Position numbers and translations under genes: made by a program. From the sequence record NC_005830.1: a DNA stretch of 20,869 bases. One strand, given 5' to 3'. Below the pieces are notes generated by a model. That model ran no database searches and was not told the origin of the DNA. It saw only the letters and a program-made list of their open reading frames with translations. Of this stretch, positions 1-20,869 are shown one piece after another (within the stretch, counting starts at the first letter, position 1; every line of letters starts with the position of its first letter).

Positions 1-9
1 CGGGGGGGA
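1..9 (+). repeat. Left inverted terminal repeat CGGGGGGGA
   Basis: Exact reverse complement of 20861-20869 (TCCCCCCCG). Confidence 0.95.
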
Positions 10-262
10 GCATGTGGTTTGCGGTTTGAGGTTCGCACTTGTGATTTTTGTTCAGTTCAGTGTGGTAATTGTTTTTTGTTCTTGTGTGTGTTTTTATCTG
101 TTTGTTTTTGTGTTTTTCTGTTTAGTTCTGTTCTTGTTCTGTTTTTGAATTTATTTCTGGACCTAAAGTGTTTTAATTGTTTTTTGTTCTTGTGTGTGTT
201 TTTATCTGTTCTGTTCAGTTAAGTTCAGTTTTGTTTCTGTTCTGTTTTGTTTTTGAATTTTG
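10..262 (+). repeat. Left subterminal T/G-rich array of short degenerate repeats (TTGTT, CTGTT, CAGTT)
   Basis: Low-complexity sequence that includes a perfect 37-bp direct repeat at 66-102 and 174-210. Confidence 0.9.
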
Positions 263-872: not shown

Positions 873-922
873 GAAAGCCTTATATACTGTTTCTTTGTAT
901 ATAAAAATAGGGGAAAAAAATG
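873..922 (+). promoter_or_regulatory. Early-type promoter/leader cassette (ORF190)
   Basis: GAAAGCCTTATATAC...AAAAATAGGGGAAAAAAATG; 47-nt spacing. Confidence 0.75.
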
Positions 923-1492
923 GAAAAGAAAGTAGATAAAAATGAGTTCTTGAATATGGTACTCTTGAAACTAGAAGAAGGTAAGGTTTTTTTAGGTAAA
1001 CATGGGTTAAAAATCAACATAAGTCTAGATAACGTTAGGATAAATAGTGGTTCAGTGTCTATAACAGTAGGAGACATATATCTTAAAGTTGATATGAGAA
1101 ACAGTGAACTTGTGTTAAATGACTTAGAAAATCATGAAGTCTACATTTACAGTTACGCAAACGATGAGGTCAAGATAAGGATTACACAAAATACGTTTTA
1201 CCTGTACATGCAGATAGATGAATTGAAACCAGTAACACAAGAGGTAATGCTGAGAGCAATAGAGGCATTAAGGATACCGTTTAGCAAAAGAGAAGGGCTT
1301 AGAATCGATATTGATTTAACGCAATATCATGAGATTGAGTACACTAGTGAAGATGGATTGCAGTTACGTTATGGTGTTGATGATATACAGATTAAGGACG
1401 ATAAACTTGTAATGAATGGTTTGGCAATAGACATACTAAATAATGACTGGTTTATATCATTTGAGAAAAACGTAATGAGCATGATTTTGTAA
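920..1492 (+). CDS. Hypothetical beta-rich acidic protein, 190 aa
   Basis: Long ORF with the cassette leader and a downstream T-tract. Confidence 0.88.
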   Translation: MEKKVDKNEFLNMVLLKLEEGKVFLGKHGLKINISLDNVRINSGSVSITVGDIYLKVDMRNSELVLNDLENHEVYIYSYANDEVKIRITQNTFYLYMQIDELKPVTQEVMLRAIEALRIPFSKREGLRIDIDLTQYHEIEYTSEDGLQLRYGVDDIQIKDDKLVMNGLAIDILNNDWFISFEKNVMSMIL

Positions 1493-3188: not shown

Positions 3189-3368
3189 ATGAGGAAAGTT
3201 GCATTTAAAGTGAATGAAGACTTGTTAGAACTGCTAGACAAGTATGCTATAAAACACGGATTGAGTAGAAGTGAAGTAATCAGAGAGGCAATAAAAAACA
3301 TGGTGAAGGAAGAGTTAGAGAAAGACAGTATAATAGTGGCAAGAGTGGAAAAAATTAGGATATGGTGA
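3189..3368 (+). CDS. Ribbon-helix-helix (CopG-like) regulator, 59 aa
   Basis: [39 protein letters not shown]... shows the RHH pattern. Not in the ORF track. Confidence 0.88.
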
Positions 3369-3608: not shown

Positions 3609-3755
3609 GTGAGAGTTGTAACATTTAAGGCAGAAGAAGAACTGTTAGCATTACTGGACAGATATGCAATGAACAAAGGGCTGTACAGGAGTGAAGTAAT
3701 CAGAGAGGCAATAATAGAATTTCTTAGCGTTAGGGGGTACAAAGTTAATGGCTAA
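3609..3755 (+). CDS. Second RHH regulator, 48 aa
   Basis: GTG start; [48 protein letters not shown]. Not in the ORF track. Confidence 0.85.
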
Positions 3756-4248
3756 TTTTTTCAGGACTGCAAAGGCGTTAATCATAATACCAGATGACAT
3801 ACCAGGTCGTCTGGTTATCTTCAAGCTTCACGGTAGGCTAGTCTATAGATATCAGACTATCAGACGTATAATCACCAAAACAGGAAGAGAGGCTTACGTA
3901 TATAGGTTTGCTAGACTACCATGTACAAAAAAGCCGAATGAACCAGATTTTCAGATATGTATAATATCAGAGTTAGAATACTGTGAGCCAGAAATAGGCG
4001 GTAGAAGAAACAAACATCCGTTGTCTTTCAGATACACAAGTTGTCAGCCATTCTATCTTAAGGATTATGATAGTCTGGACAGTCTGTACAAGGCAATGGA
4101 CAGTACTCTTGATTCCTTAATCATAGAGTATAGTGACTTTATATCAGGTTTTGGCGAGAGTGTTGAAGACCTAGCACATGAATCAACGCAAATAAATGTA
4201 TGCAATCTACTAACTGATGAAGAGGAGATAAGTCATGACTATTGTTAA
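3748..4248 (+). CDS. Hypothetical protein, 166 aa (basic N-terminal half, acidic C-terminal half)
   Basis: Overlaps both neighbouring genes in the operon. Confidence 0.85.
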
Positions 4249-4669
4249 TATTCTTCGTGTTGATATTGACCAACCGTTTGATTATCTGGACAAGCAGTTT
4301 TACGGGAATCTGACACTCAGAAAGTTACTAGTCTGGAGAATATTCTATGTAAGTAAAGTCTTCAGTCAGCATGTAGAAAGTCTGGAGTTCAGAAAGTCAT
4401 TGAGTGGAAATATTCATGTTCTTGTTACTATCAATCCAGGCATACAGAGAACACTAGTACCGTTAGCTCAGTTTCTCATGGGTGATGATATAATGAGGAC
4501 TTTCATGAACTTGAAGAGGAAAGGAAAGGGAAACTATTTGTTCAGTTACGGTAATACAGATGCTGACAGATTTTTAGCGGAAAGGCAAATTGCAAGGAAA
4601 CAGAAAGCTTTAAATAGGAAAAAAAGTAAAACTAAAAACGGGGAAAAAAATGGGGAAGGAAAAAGTTGA
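4235..4669 (+). CDS. ORF144, putative minimal AEP-superfamily (primase-like) protein
   Basis: ORF is solid. The function is inferred from LRVDID (D10, D12), SLSGNIH (H61) and GDD-x2-R motifs. Confidence 0.55.
   Translation: MTIVNILRVDIDQPFDYLDKQFYGNLTLRKLLVWRIFYVSKVFSQHVESLEFRKSLSGNIHVLVTINPGIQRTLVPLAQFLMGDDIMRTFMNLKRKGKGNYLFSYGNTDADRFLAERQIARKQKALNRKKSKTKNGEKNGEGKS
4603..4652 (+). promoter_or_regulatory. Early-type promoter/leader cassette embedded in the 3' end of ORF144
   Basis: GAAAGCTTTAAATA...AAAAACGGGGAAAAAAATG; 47-nt spacing. Confidence 0.75.
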
Positions 4670-4997
4670 AGAGAAAAAGGAAAATAAGTCAGGTGTAAAG
4701 GAAAAAATCCAAAACTGGATAGCAGACGCAAAGAAAAGAGGTACGTGGCAAACACTGTTACTGAAGCAGATAGGAAACACAAGGCTAAACGTAGCAGTAA
4801 CGCCAGACGGAAGTGCATTATTGAAGATATTCATAAACAGACCGCAAAACGGTATCATATTCAGTTTAAACGAGTTAGAAGACATAAAGAAGGCAATAGA
4901 AATAGCAGAGAGCATAAAATCTGAGTTAGAGTCTATTCCAGAGTTTAAGAACGCCAAAGTTAGCCTAAAGACTCAGAAAGGTGTGCTAGATGAGTAA
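4650..4997 (+). CDS. ORF115, putative ssDNA-binding protein (PC4/ThermoDBP-like)
   Basis: Beta strands followed by NGIIFSLNELEDIKKAI, located next to ORF135. Confidence 0.5.
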   Translation: MGKEKVEEKKENKSGVKEKIQNWIADAKKRGTWQTLLLKQIGNTRLNVAVTPDGSALLKIFINRPQNGIIFSLNELEDIKKAIEIAESIKSELESIPEFKNAKVSLKTQKGVLDE

Positions 4998-5397
4998 GTT
5001 TGCACAGAAAATTGAAAAATTAAAGAAGTCATTGCTAAACAGATTAGAAGAACAGGATATAGTGTCTGTTGATGTAGCTAGTAAAGGTTCAGTGTACATA
5101 GGTTTACTAGGATTCAGGCAGGACGATAGAAAAGCAGTTACCCTGTATGTTAGAGGACAGAATCCGAAAAAGAAACTTTACGTCAATCTCGATGAAGTGG
5201 ACAACTATATCAGAGTATTTGAGTTCTTAAAGAAGCACAAAGAGGAACTTGAAAAGATAGTAGGCAAACCGCCAAAATCGACTTCTGCACCAGACATTGA
5301 TGAACTAGAAGAGGAGCCAGATGAAGAAACGGAAGAGAAGTCAGAAGAAAAGACAGAGAAGAAAAAGAAAGAATCAGAAGACGAAGATGAGCTATGA
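4990..5397 (+). CDS. ORF135, putative ssDNA-binding protein with an acidic C-terminal tail (SIRV2 gp17-like)
   Basis: Compact N-terminal domain plus E/D/K-rich tail, directly upstream of the ATPase as in the rudivirus gp17-18-19 cluster. Confidence 0.6.
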   Translation: MSKFAQKIEKLKKSLLNRLEEQDIVSVDVASKGSVYIGLLGFRQDDRKAVTLYVRGQNPKKKLYVNLDEVDNYIRVFEFLKKHKEELEKIVGKPPKSTSAPDIDELEEEPDEETEEKSEEKTEKKKKESEDEDEL

Positions 5398-6674
5398 CAT
5401 TCGTTGAAGATTTTTTGTCAAGTTACACTTTTTCTTACAACCCTAGAAACTTAGAGACCCTGTTACTAGGTTTGGGCATTAAAGATACAGAAGGGGCAAA
5501 AAGAGCGATAAGGTTAGGGTCTGACCCAAAGTATTTCCAGGTGTATATGATGTACAATGACAAAGCCAAACTGATAACTAGGATAATGCAGTTCAATGCA
5601 GACAAATATGGTATGAAACTTACGTTTCAGAACGGTCTCTCTGTTAAGCTATCGCCGAAAGTCCTAGCGGAATCAGTAGATGACTTCTTTGACATGTTAG
5701 ACCAATGGTTCATAGTGTCAGTAGAAAAGGATGAGATTGGTGTTTTGGTGAAGTCAGTAAAACCAGTGAAACCTAAGACTGATGTGGATATAGATGAAGA
5801 CTTCTTGAAGAAAGTAGAAGCTGAAGTACCACTGTACATCTTTCTGATAGCGTCTTTTGGGTATAAGATACCAGACAAGACAACATATAACGTGTACAGA
5901 GACTATATACTAGGTCGATTCATACATTTGTTCAGACCGAGTAGTAATATTCCGTTACATATAGCAGAGTTGAGCAATAGAGGAACTGGAAAGACTACAA
6001 CTTTTCTCATTATGAGGGACTTTCTAGGATACTATTATACTACAGAACCACCTACATTGCCGTTTCTGGTCTATGATTCAAAGACTAAACAGCAGGGGAT
6101 TGTAGCAACAAAGAACGGGATAATTTTCGATGAAGTCCAAGACTGGTCTGGAGATAGAGTAAAGGCTATTCTGTCAGTATTAGACACAGGTATGGAGAAC
6201 TGTACATGGAACCGTTCGGTATCTGGAAGTAGTGAGACTATTAACAGGTGTATTCCAATAGTGTTCTTAGGCAATGAAAACTATATTAGCATAGACTTCT
6301 ACCAGGCACCGAGTAATTTACAGCAATATATAGCAGAAAAGTCATCAATGCTAGAAGAAGTACTGCTAAACAAGTATCCAGATATCTTTCCTACCAAAGC
6401 GTTCTTGGACAGGTTTGCCAGAATTGCAGTAGGCAATAATTTCCCTTCATTTACAGAGACTATAACGGGCAAAGTACTGTTCCCTACCATTCTGAGAAAG
6501 TTAATCAGAGAATTACAGAAACGTATAGACAGAGAGTCACCGTTAAACAATGACTATGAAGGAAGGACAAGAAGGAGAGTAGAAGATGTAGGACAAGTGC
6601 TAAAGGGGTTAGGGGTAGACTTAGATAAACCAGAACTAGTATACGCGTGGACAAGGTTTGTAGGGGTGCAGTGA
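5394..6674 (+). CDS. ORF426, AAA+ ATPase of BrxL/Lon-like (MCM-clade) type; probable SIRV2 gp18-like annealing ATPase
   Basis: Walker A SNRGTGKTT, T-x-P-x-L-VYD segment, Walker B GIIFDEVQ, arginine-finger-like FLDRF. Confidence 0.8.
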   Translation: MTFVEDFLSSYTFSYNPRNLETLLLGLGIKDTEGAKRAIRLGSDPKYFQVYMMYNDKAKLITRIMQFNADKYGMKLTFQNGLSVKLSPKVLAESVDDFFDMLDQWFIVSVEKDEIGVLVKSVKPVKPKTDVDIDEDFLKKVEAEVPLYIFLIASFGYKIPDKTTYNVYRDYILGRFIHLFRPSSNIPLHIAELSNRGTGKTTTFLIMRDFLGYYYTTEPPTLPFLVYDSKTKQQGIVATKNGIIFDEVQDWSGDRVKAILSVLDTGMENCTWNRSVSGSSETINRCIPIVFLGNENYISIDFYQAPSNLQQYIAEKSSMLEEVLLNKYPDIFPTKAFLDRFARIAVGNNFPSFTETITGKVLFPTILRKLIRELQKRIDRESPLNNDYEGRTRRRVEDVGQVLKGLGVDLDKPELVYAWTRFVGVQ

Positions 6675-6725
6675 CAAAATGTTTTTATATCCCGAAAAAT
6701 AGATAAGATTTGGTGAGAGAAAGTG
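6674..6725 (+). promoter_or_regulatory. Early-type promoter (ORF74-Cas4-ORF65)
   Basis: GTTTTTATATCC at 6681-6692 is identical to the core at 20582-20571 (- strand). GGTGA SD at 6712-6716. Confidence 0.6.
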
Positions 6726-6947
6726 GAGAAAGCAGAAAAATACGTAAAAATCGGGATAGACGGATACACATACAATCTGTTCAAGTCAGAGAAAGACAAA
6801 TGGAGAAAGAAGACGGGAAGGGTTCTAGATAACAGTGATATACTGCTAATCTTAGTGCAGAGGAGCAGAGCATTGGAATGTCTGGAGAATGATAAGAGCA
6901 AAACGGTGGAAGAATGCAAGAAGGAAACAGCTTTACAGAATTACTGA
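6723..6947 (+). CDS. Hypothetical basic protein, 74 aa
   Basis: GTG start with SD, lying between the ATPase and the Cas4-like gene. Confidence 0.75.
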
Positions 6948-7585
6948 AAAACATAATAGCAGAAACTTTTAAGGAACTCTCAAAGCCTGTTGATAAACTA
7001 CAATACCTCACGGTTACACAGATTTCCCAATGCCCAAGACGAAGTTGGTATGAGCTGAAAAAAGGGGGATTAGATTTAGCAAGTGAATATGCAGACATGG
7101 GGATGGTGTTTCATAGTCTGTTAGAGGACGCAGTAAAAAACAGACAAGAACTAGGTAAATGTTACACAGAAGTAGATATAGCAAAACCATTTTACGGTAT
7201 TGAAATAAGGGGAAGAATAGATACACTGTGTATCAGCAGAGATGCATACAGAATAATAGAGTTCAAGACAACAAACATGCAAGATGGGTTCAAAGGGATA
7301 GAGACAGCACATTTGAGGCAGGTTAGTTTATACTGGTACCTGACAGGAAGCCAACCAATGCGGAAGGAAATTTATCTGGTTTATATAGACAGAAAGACTG
7401 GTGAAGTCAAGGTAATCAATATGAGACATGAAAGTATACTGAAAAAGAGAGAACTAGGAAACAGAATAAAGTATCTGGTCAGAAGCTTCAATGAAAACAA
7501 AGTACCAAAGCCAGAACCAGGTAGGAGTTGTATATTCTGTCCATATAAGACGGTGTGTAAAGCATGGAAACGGTCACGGTATTGA
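6914..7585 (+). CDS. cas4: Solo Cas4-like PD-(D/E)xK nuclease with a four-Cys Fe-S cluster
   Basis: ISQCPRR, G-x-x-FH, GRID, IIEFKT, QVSLY and C-terminal [10 protein letters not shown]. Confidence 0.9.
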
Positions 7586-8940: not shown

Positions 8941-9153
8941 TTACACTCTGAGACCTACTCCAGCTAATAGACCTTTTAAGAACGTTCCTATTACTGGCAT
9001 ACTGAATATTAATCTGATTACTATGTATGCACCGATAAGGTCTCCGATTACAGAGCTGAATGAGTCTACTCCCTCGAGTATTCCAGTTGCTACGTCATAT
9101 GCTACTTGTAGTGCCTCATTTGCTAAGTTAGTTGCACTGCTTGTGGATGACAT
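8941..9153 (-). CDS. 70-aa hydrophobic membrane or structural protein; probable paralog of the 52-aa ORF at 17242-17400
   Basis: MSST start, amphipathic acidic N-terminus, ILEG motif, TM segment, TATA-like run at 9183-9191. Confidence 0.7.
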   Translation of the reverse strand: MSSTSSATNLANEALQVAYDVATGILEGVDSFSSVIGDLIGAYIVIRLIFSMPVIGTFLKGLLAGVGLRV

Positions 9154-9214
9154 GGCTGGTCTAAGTATAGTGTTGTCAGAAATATATATATACTTTAAGC
9201 TTCTATTTTTGATT

Positions 9215-9688
9215 GTGATAACAGAATCAATTCAAAACAAACTAGAAGACATTGTGAAAGAGTATAAGAAGAGAGGGATAGACTTAGGGATAATAACAAA
9301 TGTTGATGAGGTAAGCTTGTTTTTCGATACATCACAGTACGCAGAGGCAATAAAGAAGAAAGTAATAGAGATAGTAAGACAGTCAGGAACAGGAAGGGCA
9401 AAGATTGATTTTAAGACAAACGGGTATGTGATAAAATTTGCAATACAGAGAGGGTACTATAACAGGAACACAATAGAGAAGCTCAAAAGTCTAGTAGATT
9501 ACTTGCATGAACAGAAAATCAGATGCGGTTATGAGATTAAAGGTGACTTGATATTTGTCATGTCACTTACTGACTTCTTACAGAAAATCAGCGAGGATGT
9601 AAAAGAGAAACTGAAAGATGAAAGAGTTAAGATAGCATCAAAACAGGAATACACTAAGTACATAGTGGTGATAAAAGTTGAGCAGTAA
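9215..9688 (+). CDS. Hypothetical protein, about 157 aa (longest ORF 9023-9688, 221 aa)
   Basis: In-frame GTG at 9215 lies after a TATA-like region. The first 44 codons of the long ORF overlap the antisense 70-aa gene. Confidence 0.7.
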
Positions 9689-10091
9689 ACAGACACAAAA
9701 ACTTGTTGTGTCAGACCCAGAACTAAATAAGTATGTTGAGTGTATCGAGCTACTGGACGAATGGAAACAGATAATAGACAGAGCAAGAAGGACTATATTT
9801 TCACTTGACCCTGACTTTAGAAGAGAAGTATATGCAAACGTCAGTATGTTAATCGGAAATGATAATGACCCTGTGAAGCAAGTCCTTTACAAATACGTTC
9901 AGGATAAACTAGAAAGCAGAATGGGGTCTAAGGCAGAGAAAAGCAGTTTCAACTACATACCTGTTCCTGATAAAATAGTAAACTGTATGGACTTACTTAA
10001 GTCTGCAATCATGTTTGAAAAGGTAGCACAGAAATACGGAGACGTAGATGAACTAGAAAAAGAAGAAAAAAGTTCTAATAATTCGACGTAA
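9678..10091 (+). CDS. Hypothetical helical protein, 137 aa
   Basis: TTG start overlapping the upstream gene. Confidence 0.82.
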
Positions 10092-10473
10092 TAAAGTCTG
10101 CTATTTTTTGTGCTGTTTCTTGGCTTATTCCTGTTCTACTGGAAAATGCTGAAATCGCATTATTGATATACTCTGCAATCATATCACTAGAAGCACTACC
10201 AGCTTTCATTTTCAGATAACTCTTTAATAGTTTCTCACCGAAAGCTATGTACATTCCCCATTTTATATTGGGAATGCCATCAGTCTTGCAGATTTCTTTT
10301 ATCGCTAATCTGAGCTTATGGTACGGTGTAAATCCAGCTTCCCACTGTGCAGTCTGATTTGCTGTTACTGTTTCTGCCATCTCTGGCGGTACTATTCCAC
10401 CTATTGACCTATAGATATACTGTTTATATTGATACCTATCTTTTGAGTCTTGTCTGTATTTTTTATTCACCAT
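10075..10473 (-). CDS. Major capsid protein 1 (ORF132, SIRV2 fold)
   Basis: Basic N-terminus [14 protein letters not shown]; paralogous to ORF140. Confidence 0.95.
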
Positions 10474-10895
10474 TAGCTACCACCCCCCATTATAATAGGG
10501 ATTACTGCGTTATAAATTGCATCTAATACTGTCACATCTAGACCGTATACGTCGCTGTACTTTGACTCTAGGTCAGTCTTTGAGGCTTCATTTGCGGTAT
10601 TAGGGTCTGGTGAACTGTTCTTATTCTTCCAGACTTGATGTGCTAATTCTTCAGCAAATGCTATGTAACCGATATAGTCTTCTGTGGCAACTTTATTGGT
10701 CTTTAATATGTCTAGAGTCTCGTTTCTGACTTTTGACATCATGTCATTATACTGTTTCCAGTCTGCAGTAATTGATTCGGTTACAGATATTGCCATGTCT
10801 TCTGGTATCAATCCTCCTAGATTTCTCCATAAATACAGCTTGGTCTTATATCTGTCTGTAGAGTCTTGCCTTAGCTTCCTGTTTAGCTTAGCCAT
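10473..10895 (-). CDS. Major capsid protein 2 (ORF140, SIRV2 fold, amphipathic C-terminal helix)
   Basis: RKLRQDSTDRYKTK...LGGLIPEDMA aligns with [11 protein letters not shown]...[10 protein letters not shown] in ORF132; TAATG coupling. Confidence 0.95.
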   Translation of the reverse strand: MAKLNRKLRQDSTDRYKTKLYLWRNLGGLIPEDMAISVTESITADWKQYNDMMSKVRNETLDILKTNKVATEDYIGYIAFAEELAHQVWKNKNSSPDPNTANEASKTDLESKYSDVYGLDVTVLDAIYNAVIPIIMGGGS

Positions 10896-11053
10896 GGTGT
10901 CTCTAAGGTAAGTTAGCAGACTGGATATTTTATTTGTTTCGGAATACAGTGTTCACACATTCTGGTCAGTGTCCATATTTTCAGACTTATAGACTTTCAT
11001 AATATCTAAAAAACAGACATAATCTATATTAGACCGAATGTCTCAGATTTAAT

Positions 11054-11995
11054 TTGACCAGCATGTTGGAGATATATTCTGGTTGTAGGGCATGCAGTTA
11101 TGACTATTTATCAGTACTATATGAACAGTACTTCAGAAAGAATGGAATAGAGGCAAAATATGTAGGGACTTTAGTCAGACCAACAGATTCTCAGAAATTC
11201 TTGATAGATGATATTCTTCACGGTTCGCATGAACTAATGAGACAAAGAAAGAAAGTAGACTTTTTCAGAGGTGACAGTGTGCTTTACCCGTGGTATGACT
11301 TTCATATAGACAGTATACTCATAGTTCCGAGTAACTGGAATGCTGAACAGTATAGCAAATATTTTAGAAAAACATATGTTCTGCCTCACTTTGTTAATGA
11401 TGACGCAGTAGAAATGATAGTAAGAAATGAAGAGAGACTGAAAGAAGATAAACTCAGAAATATACAGTATAGTTTTCTAACAATCGGGCATAACAATGAT
11501 TTTGACAGAAAGGGTATAGTTCTGGCAAAAAGACTTATGGACAGACTGGGTATATCTAATAAACTAGTCTGTTATAGTAATGAGCCATTCTGTCATAAGG
11601 AACATAGGCTGACAGAAGTAGGTAAATATAGAGAATATTACAGAGCTAAGTTTTATGTTAGTCTGTCTTATTCAGAAAGTTTCGGTATGACTCCATTTGA
11701 GGCAATGGCAGTAGGTACACCAGTAATCTACCCTAACTGCCATGCTTATGCTGAGTATTTCAAAGGTGAAGTTGGTCTGCCGATAAACTGCCAAGGACAC
11801 AGCATAATGAGAATCGGAGACAAAGACTATAACGTCTGGTACTTTGATATTGATGAAGCAAAAGAGATTATACAGTATGCAGACTCGATGTCAGATGAAG
11901 AGTATATAGATATGTCAATAAAGACGTTTGAGTTCGCAAAACAGTTTTATGCAAGGAACATCATACCGAAGCTGATAGAGATAATGAAAAGTTAG
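11054..11995 (+). CDS. GT-B (GT4-like) glycosyltransferase, 313 aa
   Basis: E-x7-E motif ESFGMTPFEAMAVGTPVI. Confidence 0.9.
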   Translation: MTSMLEIYSGCRACSYDYLSVLYEQYFRKNGIEAKYVGTLVRPTDSQKFLIDDILHGSHELMRQRKKVDFFRGDSVLYPWYDFHIDSILIVPSNWNAEQYSKYFRKTYVLPHFVNDDAVEMIVRNEERLKEDKLRNIQYSFLTIGHNNDFDRKGIVLAKRLMDRLGISNKLVCYSNEPFCHKEHRLTEVGKYREYYRAKFYVSLSYSESFGMTPFEAMAVGTPVIYPNCHAYAEYFKGEVGLPINCQGHSIMRIGDKDYNVWYFDIDEAKEIIQYADSMSDEEYIDMSIKTFEFAKQFYARNIIPKLIEIMKS

Positions 11996-12432
11996 CTGTT
12001 TATGAATTCAAGAATCAGGTCTATCTTGTTTTCCATGCAATAGTTGTACAGAAGCATGAACGCTTCATTAAATGTGTAACTGGTACCCTTATCAACTGCA
12101 ACCATAGGCGGTCTCTTCATTTTAACTATAAGTCTGTTTTCTTCTACAGCTACTTCTGTTTCGGTAAGCACATTCAGATACTGTTTTACTGCTTCGATAC
12201 CAGTGGCTATGAGCTTCCAGTTTCCGTTTTCTAGTGGTCTCAATTTTGCTTTCTTCCCTCTGACTGTCTCAACTTTATACCATGCACCGTTCAGAAAAAC
12301 CTCTTGTCCTGTACGTACCGAATCTCCTACAGGCAGTTCTACAGTCTTGTACTTTACTTCTGCGAATTCAGTTTTAGTAAGCATTAATCTTTGCGTTCTC
12401 TCATTTCTGTATAGTCTGAACTCCTCTAGCAA
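11992..12432 (-). CDS. Hypothetical protein, 146 aa
   Basis: Convergent with the glycosyltransferase; contains a small beta-barrel-like segment GQEVFLNGAWYKVETV. Confidence 0.82.
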   Translation of the reverse strand: MLEEFRLYRNERTQRLMLTKTEFAEVKYKTVELPVGDSVRTGQEVFLNGAWYKVETVRGKKAKLRPLENGNWKLIATGIEAVKQYLNVLTETEVAVEENRLIVKMKRPPMVAVDKGTSYTFNEAFMLLYNYCMENKIDLILEFINS

Positions 12433-20595: not shown

Positions 20596-20858
20596 TTAAA
20601 CAGAACTGAACTAAACAGAACTGAACAGAACTATATAACAATAACATAACACAAAACTGAACTTAACAGAACTGAACAGATACAAACACTATAACAGAAC
20701 TAAACAGAATAGAACAGAGCAGAACAGAAACAAACAACAAAACAACACCAAACTGAACAGAACTATACAGAACAGATAAAAACACCAAACAGATAATAAC
20801 ACAACACACCACACCAACCACCAACACCACAACCATCACCAAAACCACCACCAATATA
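20596..20858 (-). repeat. Right subterminal A/C-rich array (AACAG, AACTG, ACC), the mirror of the left array
   Basis: Repeated AACAGAACTG units grade into CCA/CAC units towards the end. Confidence 0.9.
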
Positions 20859-20860
20859 GT

Positions 20861-20869
20861 TCCCCCCCG
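20861..20869 (-). repeat. Right inverted terminal repeat
   Basis: TCCCCCCCG is the reverse complement of positions 1-9. Confidence 0.95.

Follow-up and report, generated by a model that had tools for sequence, protein, structure and literature searches.

ORF144 of Acidianus filamentous virus 1 represents a family of small viral domains with a predicted RRM fold and a PrimPol-like first half of a putative active site

Which protein starts DNA synthesis in Acidianus filamentous virus 1 (AFV1)? Among double-stranded DNA (dsDNA) viruses, AFV1 and the betalipothrixviruses are textbook cases of genomes without an identifiable replication protein. A 2016 survey of dsDNA virus replication proteins listed none for AFV1, which follows an unusual route of strand displacement and recombination that depends on unknown proteins (PMC4889955), and the 2018 census of new families of archaeo-eukaryotic primases (AEPs) has no lipothrixvirus entry (PMC5862659), both in agreement with the premise that AFV1 has no recognised replication protein. 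The window analysed here is the complete AFV1 genome of 20,869 bp (Captovirus AFV1, AJ567472 / NC_005830). An earlier reading of this DNA, made from the sequence only (hereafter the sequence-only reading), had proposed that open reading frame (ORF) 144 carries the three catalytic motifs of AEPs and could be a minimal primase or PrimPol-like enzyme. In AFV1, ORF144 represents a family of ~100-residue domains of archaeal hot-spring viruses that had not been described before and has a predicted RNA recognition motif (RRM)/ferredoxin fold. The description that fits it best is that of a new minimal domain of the RRM fold in which the first half of a putative active site is AEP-like (PrimPol-like). 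It is a credible, as yet unproven, candidate for the replication enzyme that has been missing in these viruses.

A total of 16 close relatives of ORF144, with identities of 71-85%, are located on AFV1-like metagenomic contigs. Just six more proteins, of 102-126 aa, emerged when 1.84 billion representatives were searched exhaustively with a profile, and a second search added two. The metagenomic relatives also match positions 135-231 of the 267-position phrog_12608, a "conserved lipothrixviral protein" that was located by tblastn and protein searches in SIFV, SIFV2 (gp27), AFV3, AFV6, AFV7, AFV8, and AFV9 and that occurs in ~60 metagenomic clusters as well. In all betalipothrixviruses, the ORF144-type domain constitutes the C-terminal half of a protein of 260-267 aa, such as SIFV2 gp27. 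The domain was also found in SSFV3/SSRV2, and c109 of Metallosphaera turreted icosahedral virus (MTIV) is a family member (hhalign probability 96%, P 1e-9). The contig that encodes one further member has a weak match to a fusellovirus capsid, and another member lies on a contig of a Thermosphaera metagenome-assembled genome. The domain was present in every betalipothrixvirus and every AFV1-like contig encountered and, judged from sequence comparison, is common to acidic-hot-spring viruses of at least three virion types. For ORF144 and its relatives, no annotated family was found in Pfam, NCBIfam, or PADLOC, and the PHROGs matches are to families of unknown function only. The literature search found no paper discussing AFV1 ORF144, the sole paper with both terms being one on Sulfolobus pTC plasmids, and nothing on MTIV c109.

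The conservation of the family was assessed in an alignment of 56 sequences, in which the domain identity to ORF144 falls to 24-34%. Only eight of the 106 core positions are invariant: D10, D12, S55, H61, Q79, D85, R88, and R95. G58 is near-invariant (at least 90% of sequences), and residue 8, two positions before D10, is Arg in ORF144 and Lys or Arg in most relatives. Position 59 is Asn in AFV1 and His in the betalipothrixviruses ("SPSGKHIHIII"). In MTIV c109, Q79 is the only one of the eight residues that varies, being replaced by Ala. The six residues named in the sequence-only reading, D10, D12, H61, D84, D85, and R88, are where it placed them in the translation, within "LRVDIDQP" (in the context "ILRVDIDQP"), "SLSGNIHV" (55-62), and "GDD" (83-85). 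Five of the six fall in the invariant set (p = 3e-6 over all positions, 8e-4 over D/E/H/R/K positions only), whereas D84 is not invariant and R8 departs from the hhhDhD pattern. As the motif residues stay invariant at ~25% identity, the motifs mark the functional core of the family. The motif pattern in the single ORF144 sequence is by itself weak evidence. When the three motifs are written as a loose regular expression (hDh[DE] ... s.H ... h[DE]), 1.3% of shuffled ORF144 sequences match it, and ORF144 is its sole match among the 40 AFV1 proteins.

The core domain is predicted to be a ferredoxin/RRM-like βαββαβ unit. The AlphaFold2 (AF2) model of ORF144, built from a shallow alignment, has a mean predicted local distance difference test (pLDDT) score of 67, with values of 76-91 for residues 1-80. 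It contains β1 (6-14), α1 (28-42), β2 (46-54), β3 (59-67), α2 (74-82), a kink, and α2' (84-91), followed by a probable β4 at ~100-105. In a second AF2 model, that of SIFV2 gp27 (56-sequence alignment), the homologous domain has the same topology with pLDDT of 86-96 over most of its length, and β4 and a C-terminal helix are resolved. In the models, β1 carries D10 and D12, the β2-β3 hairpin together with the first part of β3 carries S55-H61, and Q79, D85, and R88 lie where α2 ends and the following helix begins. In ferredoxin/RRM-like folds, β1 and β3 are adjacent antiparallel strands and α2 returns toward the hairpin end. Given this topology, all of the invariant residues should share one pole of the domain. 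Both models are RRM/ferredoxin-like, which is the fold class that the sequence-only reading required of a primase, but they lack the (αβ)2 module of AEPs.

The structure searches did not reveal the AEP similarity anticipated by the sequence-only reading. Foldseek found no match with E < 0.03 in the PDB for either the ORF144 or the gp27 model, and a search of BFVD with the ORF144 model returned nothing beyond ORF144 itself and the AFV3 homologue. The PDB lists consist mostly of generic ferredoxin-like domains, i.e., ACT, KH, and ribosomal proteins. Among the non-significant matches are HUH domains (9pqf, the top match of the gp27 model at E 0.051, 2ec2, 2vju, 2xma, and the origin-binding domain of adeno-associated virus (AAV) Rep) and, for the gp27 model, two AEPs, the LigD PolDom of M. 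tuberculosis (2iry, E 0.17), which is the best AEP match, and the Methanocella PolDom (5dmu, E 0.41).

The signal in favour of an AEP relationship comes from profile-profile comparison. The PrimPol profile comprised 12 sequences, namely the prim-pol domain of pRN1 ORF904, five Sulfolobales plasmid PrimPols, and six PrimPols of phages and archaeal viruses, and the hhalign comparisons were made without the secondary-structure term. The ORF144 family scored 27.0 against this profile (P 9e-4, probability 22%), while the column-shuffle null gave 9.6±1.9 with a maximum of 16.6 (0/150) and the reversed template 9.0. Against the six pRN1-type plasmid PrimPols, the score was 23.0 (P 0.0055), which none of 200 shuffles reached in either direction. 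As the HUH control, a profile of the rudiviral Rep was used, SIRV2 ORF119c being a confirmed homologue of PDB 2X3G. The family scored 13.1 against it (P 0.16), a value reached by 21 of 150 shuffles, and the rudiviral Rep scored 10.4 against PrimPol (P 0.59). In the hhalign alignment, "VDID" lies on PrimPol motif I and "SGNIH" on "HGGIH / HNGVH", the whole motif II-like "SLSGNIHV" being aligned with "T.HGGIHIY / THNGVHVY", and the helix and strand in between also match. The order "LVILDFES", helix, "TLCTNTVHGGIHIYV" in pRN1 ORF904 (secondary structure inferred from the sequence pattern) is paralleled in ORF144 by "ILRVDIDQ", helix, "LEFRKSLSGNIHVLV". The PrimPol signal is partly replicated in subsets of the family. 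The eight metagenomic members alone gave P values of 0.004-0.006 with the PrimPol profile, whether complete or reduced to its archaeal-plasmid or phage half, and a score of only 9.2 against Rep; the AFV1-like group alone gave P 0.03 against PrimPol; and the betalipothrixviral group alone gave P 0.01 against the full PrimPol profile, a null result against each half, and P 0.023 against Rep.

How far this signal goes toward membership in the AEPs depends on the definition of the fold, which was taken from two reviews (PMC4538821, PMC10345425). The AEP core consists of an N-terminal (αβ)2 unit and an RRM-like unit that carries motifs I-III (PMC4538821, PMC10345425). In ORF144, "ILRVDID" with the invariant D10/D12 on β1 corresponds to motif I (hhhDhD/E on a β-strand), and the invariant S55 and H61, the latter at the start of β3, correspond to motif II (sxH, a hairpin leading into a strand). 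A third invariant acid, D85, follows H61 by 24 residues (26 in pRN1) and lies at the helix-helix kink in both AF2 models. Of the three AEP motifs claimed for ORF144, motifs I and II are thus in register with the PrimPol profile, while GDD-x2-R is off motif III. The invariant Q79 is near the motif III position in the hhalign alignment, yet it is the residue that MTIV c109 lacks; one AEP family (RepE/RepS) has Gln at motif III (PMC5862659).

Several observations weigh against assigning ORF144 to the AEPs. The residue at -2 of D10 is R/K, where AEPs have a hydrophobic residue, so that R8 breaks the strict hhhDhD. D85 does not terminate a β-strand adjacent to β1, ORF144 has no PrimPol "GGYhhhPPS" block, and hhalign pairs pRN1 D171 with L77 and Q173 with Q79 instead of placing GDD..R on motif III. 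The N-terminal (αβ)2 module is absent, D10 being only ten residues from the N-terminus, and in its model the fused N-terminal part of gp27 is not an (αβ)2 unit either. No significant AEP match was obtained in Pfam, NCBIfam, PHROGs, PDB sequence and profile searches, or Foldseek (PDB, BFVD). To our knowledge, a domain of ~100 aa is much smaller than any known AEP catalytic domain, and the aligned pRN1 and phage PrimPol domains, at ~200 aa, are about twice the size of the ORF144 domain. As for the profile signal itself, the HH probability is just 22%, the single ORF144 sequence scores only 15.6 against PrimPol and ranks 6/40 among the AFV1 proteins, the betalipothrixviral subgroup is equally weak against HUH Rep and PrimPol, and the hypothesis had been chosen on account of the motifs that themselves produce the hhalign score. 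ORF144 therefore lacks two things that define AEP membership, the two-module core and significant similarity to established members.

The likeliest of the readings considered, plausible though somewhat short of probable, is that ORF144 is a stripped-down and highly diverged relative of the catalytic RRM-like unit of PrimPol-type AEPs and acts as a nucleotidyltransferase in viral replication. All three AEP motifs are housed in the RRM-like unit (PMC10345425). The D10/D12 pair on β1, the S55/H61 element of the hairpin and β3, and Q79, D85, R88, and R95 of the helices would together bind metal and nucleotide, and ORF144 would serve as a primase or primer-extending enzyme in genome replication. 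It would probably work with the product of the upstream gene ORF166, which may supply template binding. We infer the single metal/nucleoside triphosphate site, the priming activity, and the role of ORF166 as a subunit. The primase or PrimPol-like interpretation of the sequence-only reading gains from the family profile, which stands above both the shuffle and the HUH-Rep controls, and loses from the want of a significant AEP match and the low HH probability. A bolder version of the PrimPol-type reading is rather unlikely: ORF144 and its relatives would be the smallest known primase, a ~100-residue RRM-only AEP unit (descendant or ancestor-like) that forms a two-subunit enzyme with the upstream partner and is the long-sought replication initiator shared by AFV1, betalipothrixviruses, MTIV, and further hyperthermophilic archaeal viruses whose genomes lack a recognisable replication protein.

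A second nucleic-acid-processing fold of similar size has to be weighed against the PrimPol-type reading. ORF144 could be an HUH-type RRM domain that binds, and perhaps cuts, the replication origin or the genome termini, with a metal held by [H/N]-U-H on β3; the nucleophile would be water or belong to the partner protein, or the domain would bind the origin without cleaving it. The betalipothrixviral members have a textbook H-U-H-U-U-U ("GKHIHIIIVL") on β3, for which AFV1 has N-I-H-V-L-V, and the rudiviral Rep (PDB 2X3G) has a similar "SNGLHYHILVF" after the equivalent hairpin. H-I-H, however, is confined to the betalipothrixviral and SSFV3 members; in MTIV, the AFV1 group, and every metagenomic member, Asn takes the place of the first His. 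The top Foldseek match of the gp27 model is the HUH endonuclease domain of a Rep (9pqf), and IS200/IS605 transposases and the AAV Rep domain are also listed, but every one of these matches is non-significant. The betalipothrixviral subgroup gives P 0.023 against the Rep profile, while the score of the whole family lies inside the shuffle null. In SIRV2, the Rep gene ORF119c lies divergently beside the SSB-ATPase-nuclease operon (SSB, single-stranded DNA-binding protein) that follows ORF144 in AFV1. The 56 sequences share no invariant Tyr; at Y105, four of the eight distant metagenomic members have Phe, Glu, or Arg or lack the residue. The HUH motifs contain nothing equivalent to the invariant D10/D12 on β1 or to D85/R88. 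An HUH-type domain is thus unlikely. In its canonical form, that of an HUH nickase, it is rejected, as no Tyr is conserved and the profile score is null.

Two readings outside the replication initiators use the same scaffold. ORF144 might be another metal-dependent enzyme on an RRM/ferredoxin scaffold, for example a small nuclease of Cas2-like logic, in which an Asp closes β1, or an anti-defence enzyme that modifies nucleotides or signals. It would then have no relationship to primases, and the AEP-like motifs would be convergent; this is possible but not likely. The invariant D, D, S, H, D, R, and R point to catalysis or metal binding while leaving the chemistry unspecified, and no known family is significantly similar to this one. 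The left-arm region also holds anti-defence genes of AFV1, ORF99 (AcrID1) and ORF116 (AcrIII-1) (PMC11065993 supplement), and the family is spread over unrelated morphotypes (filamentous viruses, MTIV, the contig with the weak fusellovirus capsid match), as mobile accessory genes often are. Its occurrence in every betalipothrixvirus and AFV1-like contig found fits a core rather than an accessory function, PMC11065993 does not list ORF144 as an anti-defence candidate, PADLOC finds nothing, and the in-register PrimPol profile signal is left unexplained. It is more doubtful still, and the least expected of these readings, that ORF144 is a non-catalytic RRM-like binder of nucleic acid or protein, structural or regulatory, whose polar residues serve folding or binding. 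The dominance of ACT, KH, and ribosomal-protein ferredoxin-like folds in the Foldseek lists, the basic C-terminal tail of ORF144, and the adjacent genes for ribbon-helix-helix (RHH) regulators (ORF48 in AFV1, AvtR/gp26 in SIFV2) would fit such a role. However, invariant Asp/Asp/His/Asp/Arg at ~25% identity is atypical of a pure binding module, and the basic tail is not conserved. A classical palm domain (GGDEF, Cas10, Thg1, or polymerase) was also considered and rejected, as the β2-β3 hairpin S-x-[SHG]-G-[NKRE] has no conserved acid; the classical palm is defined by one or more acids in this hairpin and an Asp at the end of β1 (PMC2904730).

The involvement of ORF166 in the PrimPol-type reading draws on the arrangement of the genes (Table 1). 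The Shine-Dalgarno-like box within the end of ORF166 suggests that translation of ORF166 and ORF144 is coupled. Except on one contig (L010), the split members of the family are preceded by an overlapping or abutting 5' ORF of 150-217 aa; on L010, the upstream ORF is only 101 aa and matches the C-terminal half of the partner on contig L002. The partners on five contigs are mutually related and share CxC...C..C clusters that look like zinc-binding elements. Neither BLAST nor hhalign found homology between the partner subfamilies, that is, ORF166, the L002-type partners, the L012 partner, MTIV a188, and the N-terminal domain of gp27, and the partnership is conserved in position without demonstrable sequence conservation. 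ORF166 is accordingly the positional counterpart of the partner ORFs and of the fused betalipothrixviral N-terminal part, which in the gp27 model consists of a ~50-residue β-β-α-β-β unit and ~75 disordered, Arg/Gly-rich, poorly conserved residues. The 9.8-kb icosahedral MTIV has the same upstream-partner layout. Since MTIV carries c109 together with a188, the gene pair is common to filamentous (Adnaviria) and icosahedral archaeal viruses.

Around the pair, a third gene (~90-115 aa, no Pfam match on record) lies directly 5' of the partner in metagenomic relatives, giving a three-gene module; it has no recognisable counterpart in AFV1. No conserved downstream neighbour of the ORF144-like genes was found, and only this ~100-aa gene two positions upstream is common to the metagenomic contigs. 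Genes for RHH/AvtR-type regulators are located just upstream in AFV1 (ORF48, ORF59b) and SIFV2 (AvtR/gp26), and their position next to the ORF166-ORF144 pair and gp27 hints at a regulated cassette.

Downstream, ORF144 shares its final 20 nt with ORF115, whose +1-frame start lies in this common stretch; seven consecutive A occur at the overlap. ORF144 belongs to the left-arm operon and lies two genes upstream of the SSB-like ORF135. The sequence-only reading had put it directly upstream of the SSB-ATPase-nuclease genes; the operon is indeed the same, but ORF115 sits between ORF144 and ORF135/ORF426/ORF223. No similarity was detected between ORF115 and ORF135 when they were compared as possible paralogues. 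According to the Pfam scan of the four genes beyond ORF115 (ORF135, ORF426, ORF74, ORF223), ORF135 matches the PHA01746-like family, i.e., the rudiviral single-stranded DNA (ssDNA)-binding protein family (the SIRV3 counterpart is annotated so), ORF426 is a BrxL/Lon-like ATPase, and ORF223 is a Cas4/PD-(D/E)XK nuclease. RefSeq NC_005830 labels ORF426 as a "protease", while its Pfam match is solely to the BrxL-like ATPase domain (E 9e-13); rudiviral homologues of ORF426 are annotated as ATPases with ssDNA-annealing activity. In SIRV2, the operon ORF131b-ORF436-ORF207 adjoins ORF119c, whereas the homologous AFV1 operon is preceded on the same strand by ORF166-ORF144-ORF115 and has no Rep homologue there. 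A Rep was sought by annotation in SIRV3 and SSRV1 and was not found.

Two observations concern the rest of the AFV1 record. Both genome ends start with CGGGGGGGA, a 9-nt inverted terminal identity, and continue with short G/T-rich repeats (TGTTTTT, GGTGGT) that differ at each end. The region labelled "ORF90" in the GenBank note has 573 nt (190 codons), which looks like a label slip in the record.

Table 1. Coordinates of ORF144, its domain elements, its neighbours, and the related gene pairs.
Feature	Sequence	Coordinates	Strand	Remarks
ORF144 (144 aa)	window	4235..4669	+	annotated CDS CAD98941 "hypothetical protein"; D-x-D / S-x-x-G-N-x-H / D-D-x-x-R family member
Core domain, residues 1-106	window	4235..4552	+	conserved; predicted ferredoxin/RRM-like
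Motif I-like "VDID", β1	window	4259..4270	+	D10, D12 invariant; paired by hhalign with PrimPol "LDFE/LDFD/IDID"
Motif II-like "SLSGNIHV"	window	4397..4420	+	residues 55-62, H61; β2-β3 hairpin and start of β3
Helical segment "AQFLMGDDIMRTFMNLKR"	window	4469..4519	+	invariant Q79, D85, R88, R95; GDD (83-85) at α2/α2' kink
Lys/Arg-rich C-terminal tail	window	4553..4666	+	weakly conserved; long low-confidence helix predicted; missing or different in distant relatives
ORF166	window	3748..4248	+	gene 5' of ORF144, 14-nt overlap; AFV1 partner ORF
GAGGAG Shine-Dalgarno-like box	window	4222..4227	+	within ORF166 3' end; 7 nt ahead of ORF144 ATG (4235)
Pair ORF166 with ORF144	window	3748-4248 with 4235-4669
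ORF144/ORF115 overlap	window	4636-4669		holds "GGGGAAAAAAATGGGGAAGGAAAAAG"
Operon ORF135-ORF426-ORF74-ORF223	window	4990-7585
ORF426	window	5394-6674
ORF48, regulator	window	3609-3755
ORF59b, regulator	window	3189-3368
"ORF90"	window	920-1492
Genome ends	window	1-120, 20750-20869
Third gene	L002	1740-2054
Third gene	L005	91-435
Third gene	L007	2966-3235
Third gene	L010	1561-1860
Third gene	L015	649-930
Partner ORF	L002	2125-2727
Partner ORF	L005	483-1088
Partner ORF	L007	3268-3921
Partner ORF	L012	1536-1991
Partner ORF	L015	878-1453
Partner ORF a188	MTIV (L040)	1438-2004
c109	MTIV (L040)	2001-2330
Partner + ORF144-like gene	L002	2125-3079
Partner + ORF144-like gene	L005	483-1431
Partner + ORF144-like gene	L007	3268-4228
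Partner + ORF144-like gene	L012	1536-2286
Partner + ORF144-like gene	L015	878-1809
Partner + ORF144-like gene	MTIV (L040)	1438-2330
Fused form	L017	5602-6399
AvtR/gp26, regulator	SIFV2 (L017)	4927-5608
ORF119c	SIRV2 (L035)	9013-9372	-
Operon ORF131b-ORF436-ORF207	SIRV2 (L035)	9868-12216	+

With these results, a former "hypothetical protein" becomes a defined family, with eight invariant residues as mutagenesis targets and an obligatory upstream partner or fusion. A primase activity of ORF144 would set the minimal catalytic unit of the AEP superfamily and would be relevant to the proposal that AEPs, HUH Reps, and palm polymerases descend from a simple RRM domain. Even without such an activity, the family would remain a conserved core gene of these viruses that probably encodes an enzyme.

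Among the known RRM-fold systems, the classical palms (including nucleotide cyclases and polymerase families A/B/Y/RT) resemble ORF144 in having an acid toward the end of strand 1 of the βαββαβ unit, and Thg1 and the CRISPR polymerases also have a basic residue two positions before the β1 acid, as in ORF144 (PMC2904730). The acidic dyad of the palm hairpin is absent from ORF144, and the β2-β3 hairpin of the family (S-x-S-G-N/K) has no conserved Asp or Glu. The HUH Reps (SIRV1 ORF119, 2X3G; 9PQF) share with ORF144 a small RRM-like domain of similar size with [H/N]-U-H-U-U-U on β3 past a Gly-containing hairpin, but the rudiviral Rep lacks the invariant β1 Asp pair and the DD..R element. The AEPs proper and LigD PolDom (PriS, 2IRY) are RRM-like as is ORF144, and the non-significant 2iry match extends over 112 columns at 20% identity. 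In PriS/LigD-type AEPs, as in ORF144, a helix separates the motif II strand from the strand that follows. Their third acid is on the strand beside β1, whereas the invariant Asp of ORF144 is at the α2 kink and the start of β4 is a variable N/D. Unlike PrimPols (PF09250 type; pRN1, pORA1, and phage), ORF144 has no (αβ)2 unit, "hDh+..GGYhhhPPS" block, Zn stem, or helix-bundle/PriCT domain, its segment past the His strand is helical, and the D-to-H spacing is 51 residues (shorter in some relatives) instead of the 34 in pRN1 PrimPol. ORF144 nevertheless has in common with them an hDh[DE] strand, a helix, a β-strand, and a hairpin/strand of the form [S/T]-x-[S/H]-G-[G/N]-h-H-h-h, and PrimPols occur in archaeal mobile elements whose hosts are likewise Sulfolobales.

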